Below are positions 1-59,295 of a stretch of DNA of 64,000 nucleotides, one piece after another (position 1 is the first letter of the stretch; the number at the start of each line of letters is the position of its first letter). Below the pieces are notes generated by a model. It was not told the DNA's origin. It worked only from the letters and a program-made list of their open reading frames with translations, and made no database searches. The position numbers were made by a program, and so were the translations under genes. Source of the stretch: Pelomyxa schiedti (taxonomy: Eukaryota; Protista; Evosea); NCBI GenBank assembly GCA_020536535.1, contig JAHLWZ010000602.1, positions 1 through 64,000 on the forward strand. Reading direction: 5' to 3'.

Positions 1-100
1 GCACAAAGGACCACCATCCGCTCGTACTCCAAACTTTCGTGGTTCAAGCCACAACCGCAATCAAATACTTTATTACTGAATGAAAGATCATGAGCCAACT

Positions 101-612
101 TCATTCATTATCTTGGGGGAGATGCATCTCCAGAGGGGGGTTGCACAAAGCATTGAGAGAGTCAAACACAACCCAAGCTGTTGGTTGGAGACTGGGACCA
201 GTTGCCACGCACTTGTTGATCAGACTCACCAACTGGGGTGGTGTTCCACGAGCGGTGCATAGAAAGCATCGTGTGAGTAATCGTCAACTGAGAGGTATTC
301 TGAAATCAGCCTTCAAAAGAGGCACAGGGTATTCCACATACAATAGGTCTGGCTTTGTTTCTTCATTCTCGAGAATGACACCTGATTGTTCCAGGTCAGG
401 TGATGCTTTGTGGTGAAAGGGATCACTCACCTTGGAGCAGAGACTCCTGACCAAGATGTAGGTTAAGCACACCACCCACTGTTTCTGGAGAGGCCTCACT
501 GCAAGTACAAAAACTTTGTGAGACTCTCCAAAACCTCACCTGTGATGATGCGGCCATCAACAACTTTTGCACTGTGAATGCACGTGTTTTCTGGTTCTGC
601 ATACTTCAACAC
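101..612 (-). pseudogene. Collapsed relic of the dynamin-like GTPase/pseudokinase family
   Basis: Contains family pieces in order: LKYAEPENTCIHSAKVVDGRIITGEVLESLTKF, VEYPVPLLKA, a trace of the SVDDY segment, and the C-terminus TARGTPPQLVSLINKCVATGPSLQPTAW...PLEMHLPQDNE*. About 2 kb of intervening sequence is missing, with stops and frameshifts. Confidence 0.85.
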
Positions 613-929
613 TGTTTCCTTCAGTGGGAAACTGCTCCAAAAAGAGAACAAAGAGGCACAAAGTATTTTATTCATCTTGGAATGGATGGATACATTTGGG
701 TGTGTTTGTGTTTGTGTTGAGGTTTTTGTATATTTATTTATAGAAATGAGGTGAACTCGGTGTGCATTTATAAAGGATTCCAAAGTCAAGGGAAAGGTAT
801 TGGGTATCTCGATGATCTTTCTGTGAACTTGATTTCCGAACTTGGTAAGTGATGACTCAGCCTCTGAGTCTCCAGTCTCGAGTCTTTCGAGTGTGCCTTC
901 TGCACAGTTTGCCTGTGTGTTCGCAGAAT

Positions 930-1110
930 CACACAACACACAGATTCTGGCAGTGCAACGGGAGAATGTGCTGCCAAAAGGAGAGTGATGCTGTGGTAAG
1001 GTGAGGCTGTGAGTGAGCAGACTCAAAATCTCCAGAGGATTGTGGAACTGAAATTTTTCTGGTTCCAAAAGGATTGTGGAACAAAAGAATGGGTTCTTTT
1101 CTCTTTGCAA
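930..1110 (-). pseudogene. Degenerate fragment of the family GTPase G1-G2 region
   Basis: KEPI..., WQHILP and CTARICVL occur in shifted frames and match exons 2-3 of the intact copies. Confidence 0.55.
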
Positions 1111-1175: not shown

Positions 1176-4100
1176 TCATTCAGTGACTCCAGCCAAGATG
1201 TGTTCTCTCGTGCACAAAATCCCCTGCTTGGTAACTTCTTCTTCTTTCAGGATTTCTTCATCAGAGCAAGTGGACAATGCCGTGAGATTCCTGAAGACAG
1301 CCCCAGAAGCGGTGCAGATTTGTGCCAGTGCCGTGCAACATCGCCTTTGCTGAGTAGCCACAATCCAATGCAGAAGCTTATCTATGAATATTCCATGTGT
1401 CATCTTGCTGAATGCACTGGAGTACAAGAAATCGTGGGCACTCACACAACAAAAACAAGTGCACATCTTGAAATCTCTTGGAATGGCAAACGAATTTGTT
1501 GCTGGAGATTCCAGCATTTGTTTGAGATGCTTGTCATAGATTCTTAAAACAGCAGCCTCTGTTATCAGATTGGGAACTGTTCCATTCAGTTCATCTGCAA
1601 TATTTTTGATGTCAACACATGTGTTGGCAAAGAAAACAGCAGGTGAGTAATCATCAACTGAGAGGCCTTCTGAAGCTTTGGTCATGACTTCTTTCAGACT
1701 TGTCAAGGCACGCTGTTCCCTTATTTCAAATGCTGCTGTTGCAAAGCAGAAAACGACACCATGTGGATGGTAAGCTCCAAGGAGCGCAGGCATGAACGGG
1801 AAGATGATTGCACCCAAGGGATCACTTATTGCATGGCCAGGAAGGTCCACAAGTTCGATTCCAGCCTTCAGAAGGGGCACAGGGTATTCCACAACGATTA
1901 TTGTGTTAAATACGGTTCGCTTCGTTCCATCATTCTCCACACCTTATTTTTTCTGATCAGAGTGATGCTTCTTGATGAAAGGAAAGGGACCTGACCACAC
2001 ACCTTGGAGCAGAGACTTCTGACCAAGATGTAGGCTGAGCTTGCCACCCACTGTCTCTGGAGGGGGCTCACTGTCTGCAATGGGTGCCCCAGGCTCGCTG
2101 CGAGTGCAAAACTTCGTGAGACTTTCCAAAACATCACCTGCAACGATGTGGCCATCAACAACTTTTGCACTGCGAATGCAGGCATCCTCTGGCTCCGCAT
2201 ACTTCAAAAGACAGATTGTGGCAGTGCCATGCCCACTCCGGACTGGGAGGATGTGCTGACCACAAAGGGAGTTGATGAGTGATGACTTTCCTAAAATTGG
2301 AAAGGAAAAAGGTGAAAGAGTGAGGAGGGTTAAACAAGTTCAAGAGAGGAGGCTCTGCACACACCAGCACCAGTGGGGCCAAAGAAAGCAATCCGAACAG
2401 GATTCTTGCTGCACACACTCCTCACAAATTCCTGTTCCTGTTTTGGCATGAGATCACTCACTTCAGGGGGCAGCTCTTTTTGCAACATTTCATACCTGTA
2501 CGAAAAATAGATTTTTGAATGGGGTCCCATTTGAGTAAATTTAGAAGAGTGGGAAGCCACACAAACCTTTGGAAACACTCAGAAATTGCGGGAATTACTT
2601 GGTCTCGTATGGCAACAAGTGCCTTTGTGAGCTTATCGTGGTATGTGTCACTTGGGTTGCAGTGTCTGTTCACAAACCTCGACGCCATGACGTACTCAAG
2701 TGGTGGGCCTTCAGCTCTCGGCACCTCACAGTCCTCCAGTGAACAACCATCAACGACATCCCTCAGGAAAATAGTGGATGCTTCTAATGGGTGAGTTCCT
2801 TCTGTTGACAATGGGGACTGTGGAGTTGTTCTGGGTGGTGACCCTTGTTCTTGCTGTGCTGTTGACATTGTAGGGTAAAAAGTGTGGAGTTTTTGCTGAA
2901 GCATACACATGCAATTAGCCATGTTGCTGGGGTTGGTGTTGGGACAAATATGTCTCATCCATAATATAGTCAAAACAAGTTCAGGAAGGGTTGTTCTGTG
3001 CTGGTTGATGTTGGCTCTTGCAAAGTCCACATCTGTGTGTGTAAACGATGCCTTCCCTGTGAGAACTGCACTTATTCCCCTTTTTGTCACACTGGTGAGG
3101 CTGACAGTATGAATATAATATAGAAGCAATAAAGCTGGTGAGAACAAAGGCTCAACATCCAGAGCTTGGTGGAGAGTGTCAATACAATGTTTTTTTTGAT
3201 CATTACTCAGAATCTGGCAAAGTGCCTTCATTGTCAGTGCTCCTAAATATGTTCTTAAACGATATTTCAAAATAAGGTTTTTCAGCGATATGTTTACAAA
3301 CCCAACCTGCATCATTATTGGCTGCAGGGCCAATGAAAGTGTAAACTGAGAGCAGTTCACAAGGATTTGGCTCACTGACAAGTGTGACCAATACCTTGGA
3401 TGCCTCAACAAGAGACATCCTCGTTGCAGGGTCACACTGGAGCAGTGAATGGACCAAGTTGCAGAACTCCTTTGGAAACGCTGGTGGTCTCATTGGGAAG
3501 TCATCATCCTCGGTCCCAAATGAAAATGCAATCTGGCCTGAGGGACCATATTCCATTGGGTAGCCTGGCAATGGCTCTTGGCCACGCATTGCCAGTTCGA
3601 ATAAAATACATCCAAGTTCAAATGATGGTTGCTGGTAAGACTGGTCAATACTCAAGGCATGTATTTTGTATTGTGCACAATTTTTAAGGGATAGGTGCAC
3701 ACCTTGTCACATTGTAAAATTGGATTGTGACCCGGATGTTGTGTGTGTCGTGCAATTCCATTGAGAATCTCAGGGGCAAGGTGACTTCGATTCCCAACTC
3801 TGTCAAGGATGTGTGCCGTTTCTGCCTTGAATGAGCCATCTGAAAATTTCATTGCACATCCAAGGTCAATCAAGACAACTTGTTCTTTGTTCTGCATTTA
3901 AATGAATATCCAGCAGTGAGAATAGAGAAGAAACACACCAAAGAGACAACGATGTTGTCCAACTTCATGTCAAAGTGAATGGTCTGGTTCACAAAGAGAT
4001 GGTTCAGGCCCGCACAAATATCTCTGGAGTACTTGTGAACAATGCCCCAGGGTGTGGTTGCAGGAACAGAGGGGAGGTTTTTCAAAAAGTGGCCGAGGGT

Positions 4101-4766
4101 CTCGGCGTGATACTCCAGAACAACCCACACACATGCATGAAACCTCTTCCTCACTGGATCAAATGCTTGCTCCTTTGGAATTTCAGGGAGGTTCTCATAG
4201 TAATCGTGTGGGGGCCTATCTGTGAAGTGGCAGAAGTACTGATTCACATTTGGGTGAGGTGTAAGACTGGATGACACCAGATATTCATTCTTCCATCAAT
4301 GGGTAAAATGAACCAAAAGGAAAACTGACTGTGTCAACACACCTCAAAGGCATTTGCTACGTTGCTCGATTGAATACCCCGGTAATTGAACAGCGCCTTG
4401 AGCACATAAGACTGATCCCTGAAGAACTCAGGGTGACCCTCCCCAATGCACTTCACCTCGAACACAATCCCTTTCCTTTCAGGTTAGAAGGACAAAAAAG
4501 AGGTGCTTCCACGACGAAACAATACCGTTGGATCCATGAGCAATCGGCCTCACCATCCTGAAGTTCTGTGCCACGACGGCGCTCGATGCCGTTCGCTTCC
4601 AGACAATTTTGCTTGCAGATTGTGCGAGGCGCGTGAAGAACGCTGCGCGCTGGGTCACCACTCGCTCATACTCCTCGTACTCCACAACTCGGCTCCTAGC
4701 TACAAACTGTGGTTGCGGTGTTTGGGACTGTGGTTGCTGTGCTATGCATCCCATGTAGTTTCCCAT
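1176..4766 (-). CDS. Chimeric gene: PINK1-like protein kinase + helical linker + dynamin-like GTPase (copy A), C-terminally truncated
   Basis: Starts MGNYMGC. Spliced kinase motifs are IAHGSNGIVFEV, VLKALFNYRGIQSSN, PHPNV, HFDMKLDN, DLGC and GNRSHLAPE. After the intron at 3243-3306, the open exon runs into GPPLEYVMASRFVNRHCN (family exon 1), then GPTGAG/KS, DLPG and FFANT. It stops at TGA 1176, before the hairpin and pseudokinase. Confidence 0.75.
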
Positions 4767-5356: not shown

Positions 5357-8300
5357 TTAATGATCAGAAGATTTAGATGTTACCGGTGTCTGCTCGTCGG
5401 GGAGCATTTCAACACAGGAATCGCACATATCACAAAGACTTTGAACTACCACCCAAGCTGCTGGTCTCCGCTTGAGCTTAGTAACCACGCACTGGTTGAT
5501 CAGATTCACCAACTGGGGTGGCGTTCTGGGAGCGATGGGCAACTGAAGAGCAGTGGTCGTGGCGAGGCACCGCAGCAGTGTCGGCTTGGGTGTGAGCTCT
5601 GACAGAATCACCCCAAACGCAAATATGTCAACTTTTGGGGAGTCGGAAAGCCAGTTTGTATTTACACATGTACCGCTGTTGCCATCATCTGAGATGTCTC
5701 TGCCTTTGCTGCCTGTATCGTCACGGAAGCCGACCAGTGCAGCGGTCACCTTGTCACCTTCTGTGGTCACGACAACGTTCTCCAGCTTAAGATTGCCATA
5801 TACAGTGCCGTGGTGGTGCAGGTCCATGATAGCGGTGATTATGTCCTTGGCAATTACCAGTGCTTCAGAGAGCTTCATGGTGGATATGTGCTCCTCCAGG
5901 TAGGCCTTGAGCGTGAATTTGAACTGTGGGTACACCATGCTCCATACATTGGGCTGCTCTCTGTATACCGTTTGCAGCTTCAGAACATGGGTAGAGCACT
6001 GTGCCATTTGGCTCCAGTAATACAGGTTCTCAAAGAACGCACTCCGATATTCTTTGTTTCGGTTTTTCAGGTCAATAACCTTCACTTGAGTAGTCGTTGT
6101 GGTTGATTGTGATTCTGAGGCAGAAGTTGTGGTTTCCGGTGCCAGCGCACTTGTCATTCTGGGTTCCACTGAAGTAGTGGGAGCGTTGGTTTTGGCGTCG
6201 GTGCCGGTGTCGGTGTCGTCGGCTAATGCGTCGGTCCTCCACGCTGAAAACAACAGGTAGTCGTCGGTCACAGTAGCCGTTACACTGCTCGAAGTCGTAG
6301 AAGTAGCTACACTGCTACTGCTCGAAGTCGTAGTGGTTGTAGTTGTAGTAGTAGTCGCAGGGATGTCGGAGTCCACAGGGGTAACCTGGCTGTTGTTGTT
6401 TGGACATGGTGGCCCCGCAATGCATACCAATGTAGATGTTGCTGCAGATGACAATGAACTGGCTGAACTTTGGACTGGCCGCTCCCACAATATCTCGCCC
6501 CGTTTCTCAAGTGCCTCGGCATTCAGTGTTCCAAAAAGGAGACGCAGATCCTGCACATCTGCGGTATTCCCAGCACCCCAAGTTTTTTTCATTTTCTCTC
6601 TCTGAATACAGAGTGCTGTGACCTTATTTAGATATATCTGGAAATACTGAGTTGTACGTTCACGGCATACATATTCCAGTTCCTTTCGTTGTTTTTCTAC
6701 CTTGTCGCTGTCACATAGAGAGTCAAGCATGTGTTGTGCCACATTTTTTTTAAAGTCATTGCCAGTGAGATGTTCACCCGTGGCAGACATCACTGAGGCT
6801 CCTGTCACTCCTAAAAGTGAACACATACTTAGTCCAAGTGCCACTGCCAATGCCGCACTGGCTCCTCCAGTGAGCGGTACTGCAACAGCTGTTGCCAAAA
6901 ACGCAACAAATCCAAGACCAGTCAGACCCACTACACCCGCCAGGGCGAGTCGGTGCATCTTATGACCATAGGTAGGAGCTGCACCCCGGAGCAGCTTTCT
7001 CACGTCATTGTCTTCGATGTCCATAATTTGTTGACATACTGCTTTGACATCATCTTGGATTTGCTTCCGCATTGTAGTAATCACGGGATGAACCACGTTC
7101 ACTGTTAGCCAATGACCAAGCTCTTTGGTAAGATAGGTCTGGAATTGTTCTGTTTCTGAGGCCATCGACCTGGGGTTATACTCCAAGGGCAGAGAAATAG
7201 CTTTCCTAAAGAAGTCCTCTTGTGATTCCTGTACTTTCTGTTTTAGAAGATCCGGAAGCTTCTTTGTGTGTTCAGTGATTCTACCCAAGATGCCTGCTTT
7301 CGCGGCCTCAATCTTCTCACTGGCAGCTTTTCTTTTTGTTTCTATATCTCCAGGAGAGCAGGACAATACCGCAAGATTATTGAAGAAGGTCCCTGATGCC
7401 GCCGATATTTGTTCAAGTGCCTGACAGCACTGCCTCTGCTGAGCAGCAATTATCCAGTGCAAGAATTTGTTCATGAATGGCGCATGTGTCTGGTGCACGT
7501 TGTCGTAGAAGAGGTCGTGTGCACTCACACAACAAAAAGATGTGCAGGTTGCAAAATCTTTAGGAATGTTGAACCACCTGGTTGCTGGTGACTGAAGCAT
7601 CTGCTTGAGGTGCTCACCGTAAACTCTTGTAATAGCAGCCTCAGTTGGCCTGTTCCCGTGGAGCTCATCTGCTATTTTACGACGGTCAACACCGGTATTG
7701 GCAAAGAAAACCTCTGGTATGGATTCCTCTACCGAGAGGCCTTTTGAAGCCTGAAAAAGTAATTTTTCCAGACTTGTCAAAGCGTGCTGTTCATTTAATT
7801 CAAATGCCGCTGTTGAATAGCAGAAAACGACACCATGTGGACGGTAAGCTCCAAGGAACACAGGCATGAATTGAGAGATAGGTTTTCGAAACTGGTCACT
7901 CTTTGCATGGCCAGGCAGATCCACAAGTTCAATACCAGCCTTCAAAAGGGGCACAGGGTACTCCACAACGATGATTGTGGTCAATATTTCTCGCTTCCTT
8001 TCTTCATTCTCATCTCCTTTTTTCTTGTCAGAGTAAACTTTAAAGTGGCAGGGAACACACCTCGGAACAGAGAAGAGCGATCCAGGAATGGAAAAAGCTT
8101 GCCGCCTGCTGTTTCTGGAGGGCCCTCATTGTCATCATTTGGTGGGGGCTCATCAGCGCAAAACTGTGGAGGGCTCCCCAAAGCCTCACCTGCTCTTTTT
8201 GGAGGGGCCTCATTGCCATCATTTGGCGGGGGCTCATCAGTGCAAAACTTCGTGAGACGCTCCAAAATCTCACCTGGTACGATGCGGCCATCAACAACTT

Positions 8301-9023
8301 TCGCCGAGCGAATACAGGCATCTTCTGGCTTGGCATACTTCAACACACACACCCTGGCAGTGCAATGTCCACTCCTCGCTGGGAGAATGTAACACTTGAA
8401 AAGGGAGTTGATGAGAGTAGACTTTCCTGAAGGTTTAAAGGAGAAGTTGAGAGGTGTGACAACCAGAGAGGGCAGAGAGGGGTCTGCACACACCAGCACC
8501 AGTGGGTCCAAAGAAAGCAATTCGAATAGGCTCCTTGCTGCACACACTCTCCACAAATTTCTGGTCCTCTGGTGGCATGAGCTCACTCGCCTCTTTTGAC
8601 CCTAGTTTTGTTGCCAGCATTTGCTCCAGGAACTTATACCTTCGTTTTGGTGTTTTAGTTAATTTTTTCCCCCAAAAAAACTTTGCTCAAGTCAGACCTT
8701 CTGAAGCACTCGGAAATGACAGTCGCTTGTTCTTGAATGGCCGTGATGGAAGTTTTGAGCTTTTCGTGGACATCCTGACTGTTGCCTGCGTGAGCTGTCA
8801 CGAACCTCGAAGCAGCTTCGTACACTAGCGGTGGGCCTTCGGCAATGGCAACCCTTTTTTTATGACTGCCACTATCGGAACAAGTGACTGAGTGAGGTGT
8901 GTTGGTATGAGTTTCAGTACTTCCTGAATTGCCAGCAGTGGCGCTAACGGGGCTGGCACTGGGGGAGGTGTTGTTACTAGGAGGTGTTATTGGTGCTTTT
9001 TCTTTGGAGTGGGTGTTCCCCAT
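5357..9023 (-). CDS. Dynamin-like GTPase - hydrophobic hairpin - pseudokinase protein (copy B, intact, 4 exons)
   Basis: MGNTHS start; G1 GPTGAG/KST; G2 GHCTAR; G3 DLPG; hairpin ...AVPLTGGAS...; kinase fold with YGNLKLEN (no HRD Asp) and VGF (no DFG Asp). Three GT-AG introns restore the frame. Confidence 0.85.
8105..8249. repeat. Imperfect in-frame tandem duplication (period 84 nt) in the copy B GTPase domain
   Basis: FCTDEPPPNDGNEAPPKRAG versus FCADEPPPNDDNEGPPETAG. Confidence 0.85.
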
Positions 9024-9381: not shown

Positions 9382-12295
9382 TCATTCAGTATTGAGGGGG
9401 AGCATCTCCAGAGGGGTGTTGCACAAAACAACAAGTGCACCATGCACCTGGTGGGCTGTTGGTCGGAGATCAGGGTCAGTTGCCACGCACTGGTCGATCA
9501 GATTCACCAACTGGGGTGGTGTCCCACGAGCGGTGGGCAACTGAGGAGCAACGCCAGCGGTCGTGGCGAGGCACCGCCGCAGTGTCGGCTTGGGTGTGAG
9601 CTCTGACAGAATCACCCCAAACGCAAATATGTCATCCTTGGGGGTGCAGAAAAGCCGGTTGGAAGAAACGCAACTGTTGGTGCTGCTGGTATCATGACCT
9701 TCATCACCACCAAAATCTCCTGTGATGGTGCTGAATCCGGCAACTGCACAACGAACCATCTTGTTGTTTTCTGTGGTCACCACGATGGTCTCCAGCCTGA
9801 GATTGCTGTGAACAATCTTATGGTGGTGGAGGTCCCTGAGAGCAGCGATGACGTTCCTGGCTATAACCAGTACATCGGCAAGTGTCATGGTTAAAATGTG
9901 CCTCTCCAGGTGCTCCCTTAAGGAGTATGTGAACCGTGGGTACACAACGCACCATACGTCAGCCTGCTGCTGGAATACCATGTGCAGAGGGAGAATGTTC
10001 GAAGAGCGTGGTGCCATGTAGCTCCAGTGATGCAGGTCCTCAAAGAACTCCCTCTGTTCACTTTCGTTGCACTTACAAAGATCAACAACCTTCACAAAAA
10101 CGGGATTGCCTTCCAGAATGCCTTCTCGTATGCATGACTCCTTTGGATACAATGCAGGTGAGTTGATAAGGTCAGGTTGGTCTTGCAGCATCCGGCTCTG
10201 TATGTCAAGTGTCCTGGCGTAGAGTTGGCCAAATTTAAGACGCATCGACTGTATCTTGTCTCTAGGGCAAGTCTCTACTATCCTTTTGACTGTACCGCGG
10301 GTTGTCACTTGATTCTGACCTCCCTTGATGAGCTCTTCTACCCATCTGCTGGCCACTGTTTCCAGTTTCGCTCTTTGGGCTTCTAATTCTTTTGGTGCCC
10401 AAAGAACTGAGTCAAGCATTTGCTGTGCAGCCAGTTTTTTGAAGTCGTCGTCAGCATGTTTGGTTGCAAGTAAAGAATCAAAAAGATTCAGTGCTAAACT
10501 TCCTCCAGTTGCTGCAGAGCCCACTCCCATTCCTGCAAAACATAATCCAAGACTGGCTCCTGCAGTGAATGGTGCTACAACCATTCCAACGACGGCCACT
10601 GCACCAATACAAAGGAGACCCAGCGACGCAGTCAATACATATCTGTGCATTTTTGCATCATAACCAGCTGTGAGCTGCAACACATCGACATCTTCAGTGT
10701 CACTACGTCGGAAGTTTTTGTAAACAATTTTCTGTATTTGCCCACACACTTCATCTATCACAGGATGAGTCACATTCACTTTCAGCCAAGGACGAAGTTT
10801 GTCTAGAAGATAATACTCAGCTTGTTCTCTTTCTGTGGCGTGCAAGTTTGGCTCATACTTGAAGGGCAGAGAAACAGCTTCCCTCAGGAAGTCACCTTGT
10901 ACTTGCTGCACTTTCTGTTTCAGAAGAAACGGAAGCTGCTGTGTGCATTCAGTGATTTCAGCCAAGATGCTTTCTTTTGTGGACAAAAGTGTCTGCTTGG
11001 TAGCTTCTTCTTTCTGGATTTCTTCACAAAAAGTGGGCAATGCTGTGAGATTCCTGAAGAAGGCTCCTGAAGCGGTGCAGATTTGCGCAAGTGCCATGCA
11101 ACATCGCCTCTGCTGGGTGGCGACAATCCAGTGCAGAAGTTTGTCCATGAATAACCCATGTGTAAATTTGCTGGATGGTTTGTTGCACATTAAGTCGTGT
11201 GCACTCACACAACAAAAAGACATGCACTTCTGGAAATCATCTGGAATGGTGAACGATCTCGTTGCTGGTGACCGAAGCATCTGTTTGAGATGCCTGTCAT
11301 ATATTCTTAAAACAGCATCATCTGTTATCAGATTGGGATCTCCATTGAGCTCGTCAGCAATATTATTGATGCCAACACCTATGTTGGCAAAGAAAATGTC
11401 GGGTGTGTAATCATCAACTGAGAGGCCTTTTGAAGCTTCAGCAATTACTTCTTTTAGACTTGCCAAGGCCACCTTGGAGCAGGGCAGAACGATCCAGGTG
11501 GGGAAAAGGCTTGACAACCACTGTTCCTGGAGGGGTCAAGTTTGTGAGACTCTCCAAAACCTCACCGGTGACGATGCGGCCATCAACAACTTTCGCCGAG
11601 CGAATGCACGCGTTTTCTGGGTCCGCATACTTCAACACACAGATTCTGGCAGTGTTCTCTCCATCCTGCATCGGGAGAATGCGCTGCCCACAAAGGGAGT
11701 TGATGAGTGATGTTTCTCCTAAAATATGAAAGGTAAAAAAGAGAGGGAGCAAAAAGTTCAAGAGAAGAGGCTGCTCACCACCACCGTCAGTGGCGCCAAA
11801 GAAAGCAATTCGAACAGGCTCCTCTTTGCTGCACACACTACTTGCAAATTTATGTTGTTCCGACATGAGATGATTCCTTTCAGGGACCCCTGTCTCGGGT
11901 AGATCTTTCTGCAAACTCTCATACCTTTACGAAAAATAGGTTCCGTTTGAGTGAATTAGAAGAGTGGGAAACCAAACAAACCCTAGGAAGCAGTCAGAAA
12001 TTGCGGGGACGAAATGTTGACGGAAGGCATCGAGTGACTTCACGAGCTTCTCGAGGTGTGTGTCTCCTCTGTTGCAGTGTCTGTTCACGAACTTCGACGC
12101 CACAACGTAATCGAGCGAGTCACTTTCGGCGGTTGGAACCTCCTTTTTTGGATTTGCAAAAGTGCTGGTGCTTGGCGAGTTCGTTATGTTATCGGTAACA
12201 ACAATGGAGTTGACACAGGCCCCTGTGCTCGACGATTTTGCGGGTTCTGCTGGTGGAACTCGATTTCGGTTGGAAGCACTCTTGGTATTACCCAT
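9382..12295 (-). pseudogene. Family copy C with inactivated GTPase (possible pseudogene or GTPase-dead variant)
   Basis: MGNTKS start. G1 reads GATDGG/ET (Lys to Glu). About 290 nt including G3 DLPG are deleted at ~11470, with a frameshift. The downstream ~695 codons (stalk, APFTAGAS hairpin, HSN/AGF pseudokinase) are open. Confidence 0.7.
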
Positions 12296-13479
12296 TTCAT
12301 ATCTTTCGGGTGGAAGTTGTTTTCCCTCCAGTTCCTGTAAAAGCGCCCCATCAGAGTACCTTCCCTTTCCACACTCCAACAGGCGTGGTCCTGCTCCTTT
12401 GCCATTGTCAAGCACATGGTGTGAGTAAATACCTTGGTTGTTGGTGGAAACATGCGGCCTAAGTCCCCGGGCTTCGAGGAAAAAGATAGTAAAAAAAAAG
12501 CCGTTGTTACGGTGGTGACGGGTACGAGGAGAAGGCGGAAATGTGGCGACGAGCCATGACGGACAACATCTGCACTAACGGGTGTGGCAACACGGACATG
12601 TACAACAATGCACCAGCGGGTACCCTTGCCTGTTGCCGCTGTTGTATGGGCGTTACTGGTGTGTCTTGCTAGTGCCGGTGTTTTTTGGCGTTGCAGGTTG
12701 TTGCCTTCAGCTTTAGGTTTTTTCCTCCCTTTTTCGGTTTCCCTTTTTGTTTCCTTTTTCCTTTTCTTGTCAAACTCCTAGTAGCTTGTTTGAAATATAA
12801 CCAGCATTGAGTTATATCTGTACACTCTTGCAACATCGGGGCTTTCCCACAGAGCACCACTGAAATGGTCAGCAATCAAGCTTACTCTGGTTTCTGGGGC
12901 TCCTTTCCTTTTTCATGGATCTCTTGGGTGCGTCCTCAGCTAACTCCTCCCTTTCCAACTAACCTGACAAGCATGTGTGGATTCCAGTGGCGATTTTGGT
13001 ATGTCCTTCTCCTTTTTTTTCCTTTTCTGTTTTCCTTTTTCTCCTTTTTTTTTCCTTTCTCCTTTTTGATTGCTCTTGTTTTATTTTTTTTTCCGGTTTG
13101 TTGTCTAGAATTTCAGCTGGTATGTGACTTCTTCTCTCTTCGTCATCCCAGTTTCACTTTGTGTAAAAGGTAGTGACTTGCAGCAGCATATGGTCTGGCA
13201 TGCCCAGGAGAGTGGCTCAACTACACATGACCCCAGATTGATGAACTGGGCACAGCACTTCACCTCTACAATAACAACACCCTTTTACACTTGAACTGAC
13301 ACCAACGAAGAAATTTTTTTTTGGCAACTTTTCTTGTTGCATTCTCTTGGTGTAGCTCCTCCTATGAGATGATGCTCGGCCCAAACCACACAAACACAAA
13401 CCTTCATCAAAGGAGTCTGCCACCGAACCTCAGCCATGAGAAGTTTGGAAATTAGATTTATTTGAGGTTAGTGACACCC

Positions 13480-16400
13480 TTAGTCTTTCTCACCTGGTAC
13501 CATCTCAATGGGGGATTGGCACATTGAGCTGAGAGCTTCAAACAAAAGGCGGGCTGTAGGGCGTACATCAGGGTCAGTTGCCACACACTGGTTGATCAGA
13601 TTCACCAACTGGGGTGGTGTTCCACGAGCGGTGGGCAACTGAGGAGCAACGCCAGCGGTCGTGGCGAGGCACCGCCGCAGTGTCGGCTTGGGTGTGAGCT
13701 CTGACAGAATCACCCCAAACGCAAATATGTCAACCTTGGGGGTGCAGAAAAGCCGGTTCGCCGCCTCACTGCAACTGCCATCTTCTGTGATTGTGCTGAA
13801 TCCGGCAACTGCAACGTCGGTCACCTTGTTGCCTTCCACGGTCACCACGATGGTCTCCAGCCTGAGGTTGCTGTGTACAATGCTACCCTGGTGGAGGTCC
13901 TTGATAGTGCCAATGATTTCCCGGGCTATCACAAGTGCATCCTCCAGCCTCATGGTGGATATGTGCCTCTCCATGTGTTCCTTCAATGAGTATGTGAACC
14001 GCGGGTACACAACGCACCACAAGTTGGGTTGTTGTCTGAATACCATTTTCAACGGCAGCACGTGCTGTGAGCACTGCGTCATCTGGTGCCAGTGATGCAG
14101 GTCCTCAAAGAACTCCCTCTGTCCACTTTCGTTGCGCATAGGAAGATCAACAACCTTCACATAAACGGTGGTGTCGTTCCAAATGCCTTCCCGTGTGCAG
14201 TTGCCTTCGAGAGCAGCACATGGTGAAGAAGTGAGAGACGAACAAGGTGGGAGAAGGACTGGATTGTCATGCAGCATCATGTCCTCTGAAGCACGTATCC
14301 GGGCAATCAGTTTCCCGAATTTCCTACGCATCGTTGACCACTTTCCCAGCGCGGTTATCTTGTCTTCAGGGCAAGCATTTATCATTGTGAGTCTCTGTTT
14401 ACAGAGGTCACTCACGCGCAGCATACGTTGCGCTATGAACTCCGTGGCTCTTCCCCTGGCCATAGTTTCCAGCTTCACTCGTTGTGCTTCTACCTTTTCT
14501 CGTTCGCAGAGTGAATCAAGCATGCGTAGTGCCAAGTCCTTTTTAAATTCATCATCAACAGTGTAATTTATTTCAGGGTAAAGTGATGCTCCCAGAGTTC
14601 CTAAAGATGCAGTCACACTTGTTCCCAATCCGAATATTAGTAAACTGCCTCCTCCAGTGACAGGGGCGAGGAGAAGAGTGGCCAAAGTCGCACATATCGA
14701 AAGGCAAGTCAGACCTACCATGGCTGCTAGAGCGTGGCGCCGCATCGTCGCAACATAGTTAGGACCTGCATTCCACAACAAATCTCTCACATCTTCAGTT
14801 GTATCAAGTTGTTGAAGGTTTTCTTCAATACATTTCTGTATTTGAATACGCACTTTAGTTATGACGGGATGAATGACATTCACTTTCAGCCAATGAATGA
14901 GATTTTGCGTGAGATATGTTTCAGCTTGTTGTGTTTTTGAGACTCGGGAACTGGGATCATACTCAAAGGGTAGAGAAAGAGCTGTCCTCAAGAAGTGATC
15001 CCTAACACTCTGGATTTCTTCTTTCAGAATAAATGGGAGCTGCTGTGTGCATTGTGTTATATCAGCCAAGAGCCTTTCTTCTGTGCAATGAATCCTCTCT
15101 TCGGCAGTTTTTCTCATTTTCTGTATATCTTCACAAGAACATGTGCACAATGCTGTGAGGTTCCTGAAGAAGGTCCCAGAAGCTCTGCCGATTTGCTCAA
15201 GGGCTGTACAGCACCGCTTCTGTTCAGCAGCAATGATCCAGTGCAAAAATTTGTCCATGAATAACCCATGTGTAAATTTGCTGGATGGTTTGTTGCACAT
15301 TAAGTCGTGTGCACTCACACAACAAAAAGACATGCACTTCTGGAAATCATCTGGAATGGTGAACGATCTCGTTGCTGGTGACTGAAGCATCTTTTTGAGA
15401 TGCCTGTCATATATTCTTAAAATAGCAGCCTCTGTTATCAGATTGGGATCCCCATTCAGCTCTTCAGCAATATCATCGAAGTCAAAATGTGTGTTGGCAA
15501 AGAAAATGTCGGGTGTGTAATCATCAACTGAGAGGCCTTTTGAAGCTTCAGCAATTACTTCTTTCAGAGTTGTCAAAGCCCCTTCGTCCTGTTTACCAAA
15601 CTTTGCCGTTGCAAAGCAGAAAACTACACCATGTGGACGGTAATGTCTCAGGACCAAAGCAATGAATGGGAAGATGATTGCACCAAGGGAGTCACTTATT
15701 GCGTGGCCAGGCAAGTCCACAAGTTCGATGCCAGCCTTCAGAAGGGGCACAGGGTATTCCACAACGATTATTGTGGTCAATATGTCTCTCATCGTTTCTT
15801 CATTCTCGACACCTGATTTTTTCTCGTCAGGGTCAACAAAGAAACCTTTTTGGTGAAAGGAATCAGACACCTTGGAGCATAGCAGAACGATCCAGGTGGG
15901 GAAAAAGCTTGCCAGACACTGTTTCTGGAGGGGTCAAGTTTGTGAGACTCTCCAAAACCTCACCTGTGACGATATGGCCATCAACAACTTTCGCCGAGCG
16001 AATGCACGCGTTTTCTGGGTCCGCATACTTCAGCACACACACTCTGGCAGTGCAATGTCCATTCTGTACTTGAAGAATGTGCTGCCCACAAAGGGAGTTG
16101 ATGAGTGATGTTTTTCCTGAAAGAAGGTGAGAGTGAGACTGGGAGCAACAACAAGGGAAGTGGTTCTGCACACACCAACACCAGTGGGGCCGTAGGTAGC
16201 AATTCGAACAGGCTCCTCTTTGCTGCACGCCCTCCTCACGGACTCCTGGTCCTCGGGTGGCATGAGTGCACTCTCTTCAGGTATCATCATCATATCAGAA
16301 AGCTGTTTCTGCAAACTCTCATACCTTTAATTTATTAAATATTCGAGGTCTAGTTAAGAAGTGGAAAGCCAAACCGTCCAAAGTAATTGACAGGAATAAG

Positions 16401-16619
16401 TTGTTCGCGTACGGCGACGAGCGACTTTGCAAGCTTTTCGTGGTATGTGTCGCATGCGTTGGTGTGTTCCTTCACGAACCTCGACGCCACTACGTAATCG
16501 AGCGGTTTTACTTCCTTTGGTTTTGCTGTAGCACCAGTTGTGGGGGTGGAAGGGACAGCAGTGGGAGTTGTGGCAGGTTCTATTGGCGAAACTTGAGGCT
16601 TACCGGCGCTGATGCCCAT
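13480..16619 (-). CDS. Dynamin-like GTPase - hydrophobic hairpin - pseudokinase protein (copy D, intact, 4 exons)
   Basis: MGISAG start; GPTGVG/KT; GHCTAR; DLPG; FFANTHFD; LAPVTGGGSL hairpin; HSNLRLET and VAGF pseudokinase motifs. Introns lie at the same positions as in copies A, B and E. Confidence 0.88.
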
Positions 16620-17205: not shown

Positions 17206-18226
<1,021 letters not shown>

Positions 18227-18515
18227 TTCTGTAGTTGTGTGTTTTTGAGTGTGACCCTTCTACTCAGAAGTAACAAATCAAGAAAAAAAAAAACAAAAAC
18301 ATTCTCAACCACATCTTGCTGTAAGAGAGAAAATGGCTGAATAAAAAAAACACCAGACCGCCGATCCTGAGCGATGATAAGGAAAATGACAACGTTCCGG
18401 TCTGTTGATTATTTTATTCAGCCAAATAACCAAGATTCCAAAAAAAGGATGAGATCAAGAAATTTCAAGAGGAAACAACGGCGGTTGGAAACCCAAAAAG
18501 AAAAACACTGCAATC

Positions 18516-51908: not shown

Positions 51909-54900
51909 ATGGGGAACACCTTCCAATCCAAGAGAGTACTACTTGAGGACGATGTGTCCGGCGATTCCCCATCCCACAAGCCGTGCGCGGCACCCGAGAC
52001 GGTTGTTGATTCCAGCCCTCGCCCCACAACTAGTGGCGACGACGGTAGCGTCAAAACTACTGTTACAAGTAACACGCCCTCACACACAGCGACTATTTCC
52101 CCAACAAGCCCGACGACAGCAACGCCTGCCACTGCCACTGCAACTTCGAATTCAACAACAGCTGCTACTGTTAATAATACGAACACACAAGCTCCATTGC
52201 CGTCCCCCCAGGCCATCGTAGTAGAAAGGCTTCTGCGAAGATACACTCACCCGGGTGACGATCACAACCAAAAGCTTGAGAAGACACTTGGGGGAATACG
52301 AACAGACGTGATGCCCAGGATTTCTGACTGCTTGAAAAGGTGTGGGTCTTTACTTTACCCGTAGTTTATTCTGATTTGAAATGTATGGTGTTATGTCTTG
52401 GCTTCAAAGATATAGAACCCTCCAAAACCGCTTGTCTCTCATTACAATGCCTGAGGAGGGTGGGTTGATGTCACTAGAAGCACAGAATTATGTACAGAGT
52501 GTATGTAATAAGGAAGATATCCGACTTGCTCTCTATGGTGCTACTGGTGCTGGTATGCAATAAACATCTCTAGTAGTTAGCTAGCTCCCTCAATGGGTTT
52601 TTTTTTCACCAGGAAAGTCTTCCCTCGTAAATTTCCTCTGTGGCTGGAAAATTCTTCCTATTAAGAGTGGTCACTGCACCGCCAGAGTGTGTTTGTTGAA
52701 GTATGCAGAACCTAAAGATGCTTGTATTCGAAGTGCCAGAGTTGTTGATGGAAAACTTGTCCCAGCTGATTTGTTTGTGAGCTTGGCCCCATATTGTGAC
52801 GAAGAACCAAACGAGACACAAAGAGCTGCTGTTAGGGACCTGCTCAAACTGTACCTTGATCGTCGTAATCTCCTCCCAGGCATGTTGAGCCCTTTTTAAG
52901 CATTTCGCAATACTAATGTTGCAAGTAGAGAACATTCAAGACTTATTAACCACTGTACTCATCGTGGAATACCCTATTGCATTCCTCAAGGCCGGCATAC
53001 AACTGGCTGACCTGCCAGGTGCGAGTAAAGGCGACCCTCTTGAACATATCTTATCTCCATTTCTGCCTTTGTTCTTGGCAGCCTTCCGTCCACATGGGCT
53101 TGGTTTTTGTTATGGGATAGCGGCTTTTGACAAGGCCGAGAATTTCGCCTGGAAGAAGCTAATGAAAGTGATGGTAGATTCAGATTCCTGGACACCCGTT
53201 TTCTTTGTCAACACCAGAACTGACCTGAAGGACCTTGCTGGAGAACTGGATATACCTTCAAAAGTGGTAACAGAGGCCCACCTCACCCGATTATGTGACC
53301 AGCGACTTGAACAATTACTCCAGGCACCCTCAATTACTCTTGATATTTTGTCCACTCAACTGGACTTTGAACCAGACACCTCTTTCTGCATAGTGGGTGC
53401 TCGGAATATGCTACCCAAGCGGGCCAAGTACATGTCGTATTACACTCTGTTCATGGACAGGTTTGTGCGCTGGATCGTTTCTATACAAATGAAGGCATGC
53501 TGTCGGGCACTAGAGCAACTGTCAGCAGCTTCAGGGAATTTCTTTCAGATTCTCATGGGTTTGTCAACCAGCTCGTGTGAAGATATCCAGAGAATGGAAG
53601 CTGATGCTAAAGAGAGAATTTTGCTCGTCAAAGCGAGGATCTTGACAGGAATTGACCAATGCACACAGGCTTTTCCCTCTCTTTTAGTACGCAAGGTCCA
53701 GGAACAACGGGATGCTTTCTTGAAGGAAGCTGTTTCTCTGTCTCCTGGCTCGGAAAGAGAACGAGCTGAAAAATATCTTGCTGAAAATCTACGAGAATGG
53801 CTGGAAGACAACGTGATCTCTTACGTGATTAAGGAAGTACACAGCCAAATACAGAAGTCCATTGAAGAAAATACTCGACAACTTCTGAACGTTAAAGATG
53901 AGAAGGTGAAAGATTTACTACGGAGTGCATTACCATACTTCAATGAGAAGGTCTACAGGCGCTCATTGGTAGCAGCAGTGGGCTTGTTTGGTGTCGCTGG
54001 CTGTAATGGCCGGCACCATGTGGGTTAAATACAAATGCGTCGATGATGATTTCAAAAGGAGTGTTGCACAAAGCATGCTTGACTCCCTCTGTGACCCAAA
54101 AAGGGTGGAGGCGCAGAGGTTAGAACTCCAAGCAGGAGCTAAGCACAAGGTGGAGGACTTCATTAGCAAACGCCTGAATGATGTTCGAATACTGTCTGCA
54201 CAGCGACAAAGAATGAAAAATTATCGTTCCCAGGAAAGTACTGAGTGGGACACTACATATTGGACAGGAATGCGTAGCGATTTTGGAAAGCTATTTGCTG
54301 AGACACTTCACATTCAGGACCTGCTGTTGGAAGACCCACCAGTCTTTCCAAGCCCCTCTGCTTCTTCCTCGCCAACTTCAACATTCTCGCCATGTTATTC
54401 TCCTCTGGAAAGATACAGGAAGGACTCATACCCACTGGAAGCCATTTGGAACAACCAAACTGTTTCTGTGAAGGTTGTTGATGTTTCAGAGGGCAGCAAA
54501 GACAATCCGGGGAAGTTCTTCGAGGATCTATATCACTGGCATAGAATGGCGCAGTGCTCGCCACATGTGCTGCCGCTGCATATGGTATTCAAGCAGACGG
54601 TATTCCGATGCAACACCCCTCTCTCGGAGAGTAGAGATATGAGGGGAGGAGGGAAGGAGCATACGAGCCAACAATCCGAGGTCTGGTGTGTGGTGTACCC
54701 ACAGTTCACATGCACACTCAATGACTTCTTGGAGAGGCACATATCCTCCATGCAGCTGATCGACGCACTGGAGATAGCCAAGACAATCATCACCGCGATC
54801 AGAGACATCCACGAATTCGGGACTGTACACGGAAACCTCAGGCTGGAAGCCGTGGTGGTAAATGCACAAGGCAGCAAAGTGACCGGCGTTGCAGTCGCCG

Positions 54901-55391
54901 GGTTCAGGACAAAAGCAGGAAGCAGCAATAACTCCACTGATAACCCCAATGACAATGGCGGTCGCAGCAGCAGCAGCAGCACCCGCGATGACGAGAACAA
55001 CACCTCATTCAGTTCCGCGAACCTGCTTTCTCGCGCAATGGACGACAGTTCCGCCGACCGGCTTTTCCACTCCCCGAAAGAACACGTCGACATACTCTCG
55101 TTTGGTAAGATTCTATCCGAGCTTACTCCCAAACCAAAGCTTCTGCGCTGTCACATGATCGGCGGCGATGAGACCACCGCCTGCACAGCGAGAGGTGGTT
55201 CTTCTGTTGTCACTGATGCTACTCTGCATTTGGTCACGGCGCGTGGCACTCCCCCTCAGGTGGTAAAGTTGATTAGCAGGTGTGTGAGCACAGAAGCCAG
55301 TCTTCGCCCTACGGCCCAGAAAGTAGTTAAGCGCCTTACCAACATTTGTGCATCCCCCATTGAGATGCTGGCACTGTTGGAAGAAGATTGA
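51909..55391 (+). CDS. Dynamin-like GTPase - pseudokinase family copy E, frameshifted in the hairpin (possible pseudogene)
   Basis: MGNTFQS; GATGAG/KS; GHCTAR; DLPG; FFVNTRTD; frameshift near 53990; HGNLRLEA and VAGF pseudokinase motifs. Confidence 0.78.
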
Positions 55392-57849: not shown

Positions 57850-59295
57850 CTCTTTGCCTTCCAAATTAGCCTCTGCAAGTGAAACGGGAACCCTTGTGTT
57901 CGATTGGCGGAATGAAATAATCAACAGACCGGAACGCTGTCAATTTCTTCAAAAACTGGCAATCATTCTCGGTTACCAGAACAACAACAGTTTGAAGAGA
58001 TTACTTTTGATGGCTGACAATAGTGTGTTTCCACCTTGTTGCCAACCCAAAGAATTATATTTATTTATTATTAATTCAAGGCGGGCTGCACCCACGAAGC
58101 CAGTTACTGCTCCAGGCTCTTTTCATGTTGGAGGAGGGAAGTCTTGACAGTGCAATTCGCCTTGTTTCGGATGCTTTCAAGCATTTTGAGAGCTGTCGCC
58201 TAACCAGTACCTTTGGCCGTAAAACACAGTGTTTTCAATTTACGATTAAAAAAAGGTCCTGATGACGATGTGGATGAAGATGATATGCTGGAATTGTGTT
58301 ACCTTCCTGGCTTACTATTTCTTTTTGGTCTGGGTTGTGTCATCAAAGATCACACCGCCCTACATCAACGCCTTCCTTCAACCCTTAAAGTTGCATTTTC
58401 TCGTGCTGTTTCCTGCTCTGGTTCGCTAATGGGAGACCTGTGCAAGGCTGTGATGTTGTCAGCCAAAAGCTTGGTGGAATCTCCCAGAAATGATGAAAAA
58501 GTGCCACCAGTGACTTCCCTCTCTGAAGAGTGGGATGCCCTTTTTGAAGAAGTATCACGTTCCATTCAGGAAGGTGATCACAATATACAACAAAGTTCAT
58601 GGGCACGTATGTATTATGTCGCGCTGTGGACAACTTTCTGCTTAGAGAGCAGTGAATGCGAGCGCCACTGGACTACGTTGTCAAGAATGGATGTTCTACG
58701 GAATTCAACGACCGCCCTTCAGCAGACTGAATGCAGCGAAAACAACTGTGATCAGAGTACAGTGAAAACACCGGAGGAACCAGTAACCCTCTTGCCTTCT
58801 TCCTCTCTGTCATTCCTCGGTTTATGCTACAGATATGGTCTTGGAGGCTTGGACAAGGACCCAAATAAGGCGGTGTCACTATTCCACAGTGCTGCCGAAG
58901 ATTCTGGCAATCCCCACGCAACAAATCACCTTGGAATGTGTTACAAAACCGGCGATGGTGTTGACAAGGATGTAAACAAGGCCGTAACACTTTTCATGCA
59001 GGCTGCTGATTCCGGCAATGTCCCAGCAATGAATAACCTCGGGGTGTGCTACTTCCACACTGGAGAGGGTGTTGAGCAGGACAAGAAAAAGGGCTGGTCA
59101 CTTTTCTACAGGGCTGCTGATGCTGGGGATTCCGGGGCAATGCTGAACCTGGCCTTGTTGTATCAGAAGGTGCACAGTGACCCCAGAGAGTCACTTTTGT
59201 TCTTCAGATGGGCCTCTGACAATGGGTCAAGGCTTGCCCGTTTCCAGCTAGAAAGGCTTCTGGATGACCCTCTTTATTGGAAATCCTTGGCTTGA
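57850..59295 (+). CDS. Sel1-like repeat protein, 5' end unresolved
   Basis: LGLCYRYGLGGLDKDPNKAVSLF, LGMCYKTGDGVDKDVNKAVTLF, LGVCYFHTGEGVEQDKKKG. Confidence 0.8.

Follow-up and report, generated by a model that had tools for sequence, protein, structure and literature searches.

In the Roco family, which includes LRRK2, one polypeptide carries a GTPase and, C-terminal to it, a TKL-like kinase; the Roco GTPase is a small Roc-COR enzyme and not a dynamin. Nostoc BDLP, IniA and mitofusins 1 and 2 (MFN1 and MFN2) are dynamin-type GTPases with a neck/trunk stalk and a membrane hairpin, and they carry no kinase. The combination of Dynamin_N with a kinase is itself already known, since Pfam annotates it on invertebrate DSTYK-like proteins. 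Canonical DSTYK (Dusty/RIPK5/SgK496), a highly conserved single-copy protein, has been linked to kidney malformations, spastic paraplegia type 23, notochord vacuole fusion and late-endosome STING signalling (PMC8490499, PMC7012607, PMC11933320). Here we describe Pelo_7647, a minus-strand gene of the amoeba Pelomyxa schiedti, in a window of 64,000 nucleotides (contig JAHLWZ010000602.1, positions 1 to 64,000, the reference for coordinates below). Our best overall explanation, to which we assign a probability of about 0.65, is that Pelo_7647 encodes a BDLP/mitofusin-type GTPase bound to a membrane and joined to a dead kinase, that it belongs to a widespread group of such fusions, most of them unannotated, and that its kinase died recently within Pelomyxa. 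An initial annotation had called the gene a mirror image of DSTYK, with an intact P-loop and a dead kinase where DSTYK has a degenerate P-loop region, and had proposed that an ancestral fusion lost opposite activities in different lineages.

Gene model, GTPase and pseudokinase of Pelo_7647

The gene runs from an ATG at 16619 to a stop at 13480, exactly as initially annotated, and encodes 990 amino acids in four exons; our model of 991 codons agrees with that of NCBI. Its introns of 50, 59 and 58 nt are all GT-AG. An RNA contig spans intron 3 as a 58-nt skip with GT-AG ends, exon 2 is covered by an RNA contig at 16175-16324, and none of the RNA contigs examined bridges intron 1 or 2; these contigs carry no information on expression level. 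Bacterial contamination was rejected in view of the spliceosomal introns and the NCBI listing as a Pelomyxa gene. Compared with the reference, runs from the same sample show a 9-nt insertion in intron 1 and single-base changes (16336, 16407 and 16584), which represent alleles or near-identical copies.

Pfam Dynamin_N matches the protein with 45.8 bits, and the hallmarks of the dynamin superfamily, a G1 of the form GxxxxGK[ST], the G2 threonine and a DxxG at G3, are all present. The top matches of a G-domain profile of the family were BDLP (E = 2e-17), Campylobacter dynamin-like proteins (DLPs) and MFN1 (E = 6e-13). The same profile aligned switch I with the mitofusin G-H-x-T motif; in MFN1/2, catalysis depends on the threonine of switch I (PMC6820788). 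An AlphaFold (AF2) model of residues 100-735 (predicted local distance difference test, pLDDT, 80.7) had BDLP (2j69) as its best Foldseek match and matched MFN1 with a Z score of 20.9. It aligns to BDLP 51-693 and MFN1 51-736 and includes a neck/trunk with a returning C-terminal helix; the match extends as far as the final dynamin-fold helix, directly after which the kinase is fused. The stalk sequences themselves do not match those of BDLP, IniA or the mitofusins. A Roco identity was rejected, because the protein has no Roc or COR Pfam match and its fold is BDLP-like. The alignment behind the model (the A6 profile) includes three DSTYK-like rows; a match of this profile with E = 2.6e-26 and an ESM Atlas shape match with a template modelling (TM) score of 0.71 are therefore not independent, and we did not rely on them.

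Hydropathy over 19 residues reaches 2.13 at amino acids 578-596, compared with at most 1.2 in DSTYK and DSTYK-like proteins, and marks a candidate membrane hairpin at which model confidence is low. A Met-Gly start, a candidate for N-myristoylation, is common to all full Pelomyxa copies. Judged from its sequence, Pelo_7647 would be an intact-looking, membrane-anchored GTPase of the BDLP/mitofusin type that may hydrolyse GTP, bind membrane and be myristoylated. Some observations count against our overall explanation. The G4 motif is THFD where the consensus is [NT]-[KR]-x-D, so that Asp is retained and, unlike in BDLP, IniA and the mitofusins, His replaces the basic residue. The same position is variable among the dead-kinase copies (Cys, Arg, Ser or His). 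Because the equivalent residue of MFN2, Arg259, forms the central salt bridge of the G interface (PMC6820788), GTPase activity and dimerisation of Pelo_7647 may be altered. Finally, RNA cover of the gene is thin and partial.

The kinase region scores above the cut-offs of Pfam Pkinase/PK_Tyr_Ser-Thr. It lacks the activation segment and, in addition, the Gly-rich loop, the catalytic Asp and Asn, the DFG Asp and APE; because these last motifs are missing, it is a pseudokinase by motif. The motifs quoted in the initial annotation (the linker, FFEDLHHW and VAGF) are present at the locus, and its statement that the P-loop is intact and the kinase dead holds for this protein, with the qualification that G1-G3 are intact and G4 is a variant. 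A two-residue deletion, seen by comparison with a live paralog on contig C824, probably explains the loss of DFG. The ratio of nonsynonymous to synonymous substitution (dN/dS) between the pseudokinase and its paralogs is 0.24-0.54, at dS values of 0.35-0.97, and the domain is therefore still constrained.

These values also bear on the alternative that Pelo_7647 is a decaying duplicate whose kinase erodes without a role. Neighbouring copies are indeed truncated, deleted or broken in G1, dN/dS rises to 0.9 in some pairs, and the low RNA cover fits as well. Against it stand the open 991-codon frame, the spliced RNA, the constraint on the kinase and the retention of the same dead-kinase motifs in copies that are only 46-65% identical. 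We consider such decay improbable, and pseudogene status of Pelo_7647 was rejected.

Besides the copies in the window, about ten further family copies lie on other Pelomyxa contigs. The C824 paralog has intact G motifs (GLTGVGKS, TTAR, DLAG and TCVD), a canonical kinase (GKGGCSAVY, VAIK, FFEE, HRDIKLEN, DFG and APE) and all three intron positions of Pelo_7647; its G1 and G2 motifs come from exons that were read one by one, and the G-domain tree does not include it. The copy on C492 is nearly canonical and the one on C406 half-way. In the kinase tree, dead Pelomyxa copies group with live ones (99/98). This grouping, together with a live C824 paralog that has the same introns, indicates that the kinase died within Pelomyxa's own expansion; the shared intron positions and the grouping also disfavour a foreign origin of the C824 contig. 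A family member of 2008 amino acids on C406 has two caspase-clan domains after its dead kinase. A second Pelomyxa type of DLP-kinase protein, on C927 (607-4911 of locus L055), has a live kinase, a longer C-terminal part and a long branch in the trees, and its G1, GQTNSGKS, resembles that of hemichordate proteins.

Relatives of Pelo_7647 and the N-terminal region of DSTYK

A profile search yielded about 40 proteins whose match extends from the G domain through the kinase in one collinear stretch (E = 1e-103 to 1e-23). The named relatives include a tandem cluster of Acytostelium subglobosum (SAMD00019534_114510-114680, best E = 6e-103); others are from the chytrid Gonapodya (HDU93_003123), bdelloid rotifers and Saccoglossus ('DSTYK-like', E = 2e-28). 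Branchiostoma and Ptychodera gave partial matches, and the remaining relatives are metagenome proteins. The best ESM Atlas matches were an animal Dynamin_N-plus-kinase cluster (0.95) and a DSTYK cluster (0.90). In word searches, exon 4 and the live paralog matched nothing other than Pelomyxa paralogs and unrelated kinases, and none of the 24 bacterial loci found in a genome scan with a hemichordate alignment was a kinase fusion.

Clade A comprises Pelomyxa, Acytostelium, the chytrid, bdelloid rotifers and metagenome eukaryotes; clade B comprises animal DSTYK-like proteins, with both sites intact, and canonical DSTYK, with a dead GTPase. The hypothetical proteins of Acytostelium, Gonapodya and the rotifers are closest to Pelo_7647, falling in the same clade in both trees (99/98) and having the hairpin in most of those checked. 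They differ from it in sequence (17-25% identity), in their independent kinase losses and in that several carry a C-terminal RING; in two family members (P0036 and P0045) the kinase is followed by a terminal C3HC4 RING finger. Kinases were live by motif in 15 and dead in 32 of the 47 clade A proteins that have a kinase core, and the G-domain tree shows at least seven changes of kinase state. Acytostelium, rotifers and metagenome proteins all include further cases of kinase death. Because live kinases occur in both branches, repeated loss would be the simplest reading. The Acytostelium cluster (locus L053, DF837604) is intron-poor, lies at a scaffold end and mixes live and dead kinase copies, paralleling the Pelomyxa array. 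The invertebrate DSTYK-like proteins of Saccoglossus, Ptychodera, Glandiceps and Lingula share intact G motifs, a C-terminal kinase and tandem copies with the Pelomyxa family; they differ in having a live kinase, no hairpin and no Met-Gly start, and form a separate clade in both trees. Branchiostoma falls with further Ptychodera proteins in a third animal Dynamin_N-plus-kinase clade, C (P0150, P0152 and P0162), in which G4 is NKWD as in mitofusins and the stalk barely matches that of A or B.

A search from the Saccoglossus kinase recovered canonical DSTYKs from cnidarians to mammals. Among the 16 compared, which were those named as such from non-human species, none kept G1, the G2 Thr, G3 DxxG and G4 were also gone, and the kinase was live in every case. 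Both sets of motifs were intact in all ten hemichordate and brachiopod DSTYK-like proteins. The kinase-free regions of the two groups aligned over 519 columns (E = 4.7e-45), and the groups formed one clade in both trees (100/98 for the kinase, 88/85 for the G domain). The N-terminal part of canonical DSTYK, about 650 residues, had no match in Pfam, Dynamin_N included, or in the PDB. The unannotated front two-thirds of DSTYK is a dead version of the mitofusin-type GTPase machine. The degenerate P-loop region that the initial annotation ascribed to DSTYK is real, and homology of the N-terminal part to intact dynamin-like domains extends over its whole length. An incomplete literature search found no account of DSTYK as a pseudo-dynamin; it may already be hinted at in database annotations.

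The main value of the present analysis lies in reading DSTYK as a pseudo-dynamin and in a broad, uncharacterised family; Pelo_7647, as one of many dead-kinase copies, matters mainly as an entry point to that family. A dead mitofusin-like GTPase and stalk would offer a structural reading of the DSTYK N-terminal part, in terms of membrane tethering or oligomerisation. Several human DSTYK variants fall outside the kinase (PMC7012607).

Pelo_7647 and canonical DSTYK are complementary in their intact sites, which would fit one deep split with loss of the kinase on the amoebozoan side and of the GTPase on the animal side. Members with both sites intact occur, however, in Pelomyxa (C824), Acytostelium, Gonapodya, rotifers, hemichordates and Lingula, and the kinase state has changed too often for such a split. 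A single deep mirror-image loss was rejected on the evidence of the C824 paralog, which contradicts it unless the contig is foreign, and we regard this history as highly improbable. The mirror image fits the two proteins, not their history: the complementarity that had been noted stands, and the deep division between amoebae and animals does not.

Single or separate fusion of GTPase and kinase

The link between Pelo_7647 and DSTYK is, on profile evidence, real but distant. The two share part order and size, a post-hairpin motif and a kinase-free alignment of 526 columns (Pelomyxa-family profile against canonical DSTYK profile, probability 97%, E = 7.7e-11). Such an alignment could arise between any pair of dynamin-like domains, and the stalk alone is the better test. 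A stalk profile of the non-animal family matched DSTYK with E = 2.8e-7 and DSTYK-like proteins with E = 8.3e-8, compared with 0.13-0.17 for reversed sequences and 0.014-0.8 for bacterial DLP stalks. As a hidden Markov model (HMM), it gave DSTYK a median of 11.7 and a maximum of 25.3 bits; bacterial DLPs reached 5.0 bits at most, other Pelomyxa DLPs 4.3 and reversed sequences 7.9. The BDLP stalk scored 3 bits. The last helices and the post-hairpin motif contributed most of the stalk signal, which was weak when the direction of comparison was reversed. Pelo_7647 has a collinear G domain, stalk and kinase, its homology reaches beyond the two catalytic domains, and it belongs to a wider group that includes DSTYK. 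It lies outside the canonical DSTYK family: identity is about 14%, it has no live HRDIKLKN/DLG kinase, it falls in another branch and not inside the DSTYK clade, and it shows neither the degenerate G motifs nor the absence of the hairpin.

The initial annotation had based the likeness to DSTYK on the kinase and the linker before it, and its proposal was to be refuted if these matched DSTYK no better than generic TKL kinases. For the kinase this was the outcome. When a DSTYK kinase profile was run against 260 generic kinase domains, chosen for likeness to the Pelomyxa profile, Pelo_7647 ranked 258/260 and the live C824 paralog 119/260. The live paralog does share HRDIKLxN and a similar alphaF entry with canonical DSTYK; HRD[IL]KLxN was present in 16/260 generic domains, and the motifs were rejected as DSTYK-specific. 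The stalk, in contrast, scored above its controls.

Clades A and B probably descend from one ancestral fusion in which both sites were intact. In a quick maximum-likelihood (ML) kinase tree the two clades stood together against generic kinases with 96 by the Shimodaira-Hasegawa-like approximate likelihood ratio test (SH-aLRT), and a tree with the most DSTYK-like generic kinases gave 84/96. The alternative is that a BDLP/mitofusin-type GTPase and a TKL-like kinase were joined separately in clade A and in the DSTYK branch, the N-terminal likeness reflecting shared dynamin ancestry. Several results weigh on that side. Besides the kinase ranking, DSTYK stalk profiles barely score single clade A sequences (Pelo_7647, 1.5 bits); support for A plus B falls to 28/19 when clade C, two rows of which are partial, is added; and the G-domain tree has no resolution at this depth (56/65), so that of the separate phylogenies that had been proposed the kinase trees favour one fusion and the G tree does not decide. 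Approximately unbiased (AU) tests reject neither arrangement (p 0.37 both ways; p 0.365 for DSTYK with the generic block). DLP controls were few, with full mitofusin and cyanobacterial BDLP sequences absent from the trees. The hairpin is present in A and absent in B, and the supposed linker belongs to the dynamin fold. On the other hand, the stalk profile ranks DSTYK ahead of every other DLP tested, those of Pelomyxa itself among them, the fusion point is identical, and three ML kinase trees keep the fusion kinases on one side. We consider separate fusions unlikely.

Possible role, feature coordinates and other copies in the window

A myristoylated Gly2 and the hairpin would attach the protein to a membrane. 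By analogy with BDLP and mitofusin, GTP binding could then bring about head-to-head pairing of G domains and a movement of the stalk. The pseudokinases would thereby be clustered beside the heads; there, without catalysis, these might act as scaffold, ligand sensor or partner of a live paralog. Given the tandem expansion, fast change, variable hairpin and caspase and RING fusions, we favour a role in defence at phagosome or endosome membranes of this bacterium-eating amoeba. The main rival on this point is housekeeping membrane fusion at the vacuole, endosome or mitochondrion-related organelle. It would echo the control of vacuole fusion by DSTYK in zebrafish (PMC7012607) and the location of DSTYK on late endosomes (PMC11933320). 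Housekeeping fusogens seldom expand in tandem, diverge fast, occur patchily or carry effector-type fusions, and we hold this role to be doubtful. It is nonetheless compatible with our preferred explanation of Pelo_7647, since a single live paralog could serve it.

More tentatively, DSTYK could be the lone conserved survivor of an undescribed superfamily of mitofusin-type GTPase-kinases that goes back to the ancestor of Amoebozoa and opisthokonts and in which either half can be switched off. DSTYK would have retained its kinase, and its dead dynamin domain might then be a scaffold at endosomes and vacuoles; the fast-evolving amoeba and rotifer copies would have retained the GTPase, their dead kinase being a sensor or decoy working with live paralogs in defence at the membrane.

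Besides Pelo_7647, the window contains four more family copies (Table 1) and one remnant.

Table 1. Features of Pelo_7647 and other family copies in the window (aa, amino acids)
Feature	Position	Strand	Basis or remark
Exon 1, aa 1-81	16375-16619	-	Met-Gly start, Pro/Thr-rich linker, first helices
Exon 2, aa 82-131, ends within P-loop	16176-16324	-	gene model, RNA contig
Intron 2, interrupts G1	16117-16175	-	position common to paralogs on C824, C492, C406 and C882
Exon 3, aa 132-213, remaining G1 and G2	15871-16116	-	Pfam Dynamin_N
Intron 3	15813-15870	-	spliced out in RNA contig
Exon 4, aa 214-990, G3-G5, stalk, hairpin, pseudokinase	13480-15812	-	
BDLP/mitofusin-type G domain, aa ~118-405	15238-16218	-	profile, Pfam, fold
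G1 GPTGVGKTS	16191-16106	-	contiguous only once intron 2 is removed
G2 NGHCTAR	16063-16043	-	
G3 DLPG	15717-15706	-	
G4 NTHFD	15495-15481	-	
G5 VSA	15318-15304	-	
Helical stalk, aa ~406-737, closing helix returns to G domain	14242-15237	-	AF2 model, BDLP/MFN1 fold match
Hydrophobic hairpin, aa 578-622, candidate membrane anchor	14587-14721	-	hydropathy
Post-hairpin motif V-D-x-E-F-K-K-x-x-A-x-x-M-L-D-S-L	14509-14559	-	DSTYK counterpart I-D-x-E-W-K-R-K-V-A
Last stalk helix and linker to kinase	14260-14331	-	the 'linker' of the initial annotation
Pseudokinase, aa ~755-978	13519-14190	-	motifs, Pfam
beta3 Lys, retained	14166-14155	-	
FFEDLHHW	14112-14089	-	
Catalytic loop HSNLRLET	13875-13852	-	HSN replaces HRD
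VAGF/AGF in DFG position	13809-13798	-	
Pelo_7646, tandem paralog	9382-12415	-	dead kinase, G1 broken (GATDGGGET), G3 segment missing
Tandem paralog, dead kinase	5357-9023	-	long Thr/Ser-rich insert before kinase
Pelo_7644	1176-4766	-	different kinase (HFD, DLG) N-terminal; family GTPase ends early in stalk
Pelo_7664 (copy E of the initial annotation), dead kinase	52140-55391	+	start approximate

Both activities are lost in Pelo_7646, whose hairpin matches Pfam ApoL above the cut-off. The tandem paralog at 5357-9023 has an 84-nt tandem duplication in exon 3 (8105-8272), and its Thr/Ser-rich insert lies between stalk and kinase at about 6000-6400. In Pelo_7664 the frame changes across the hairpin at 53988-54028 (+), where the NCBI intron model excises the hairpin; either a frameshift or an intron is involved. 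The remnant, at 100-1110 (-), is a collapsed copy in which extensive deletions have brought pieces of the G domain up against the kinase C-lobe; its exon 3 carries an unrelated insert. The neighbouring gene at 17230-18230 (+) was recognised by eye as what we take to be a proteasome alpha subunit. A 44-nt inverted repeat, 91% complementary, is found at 18382-18425 and 57904-57947, 39 kb apart.

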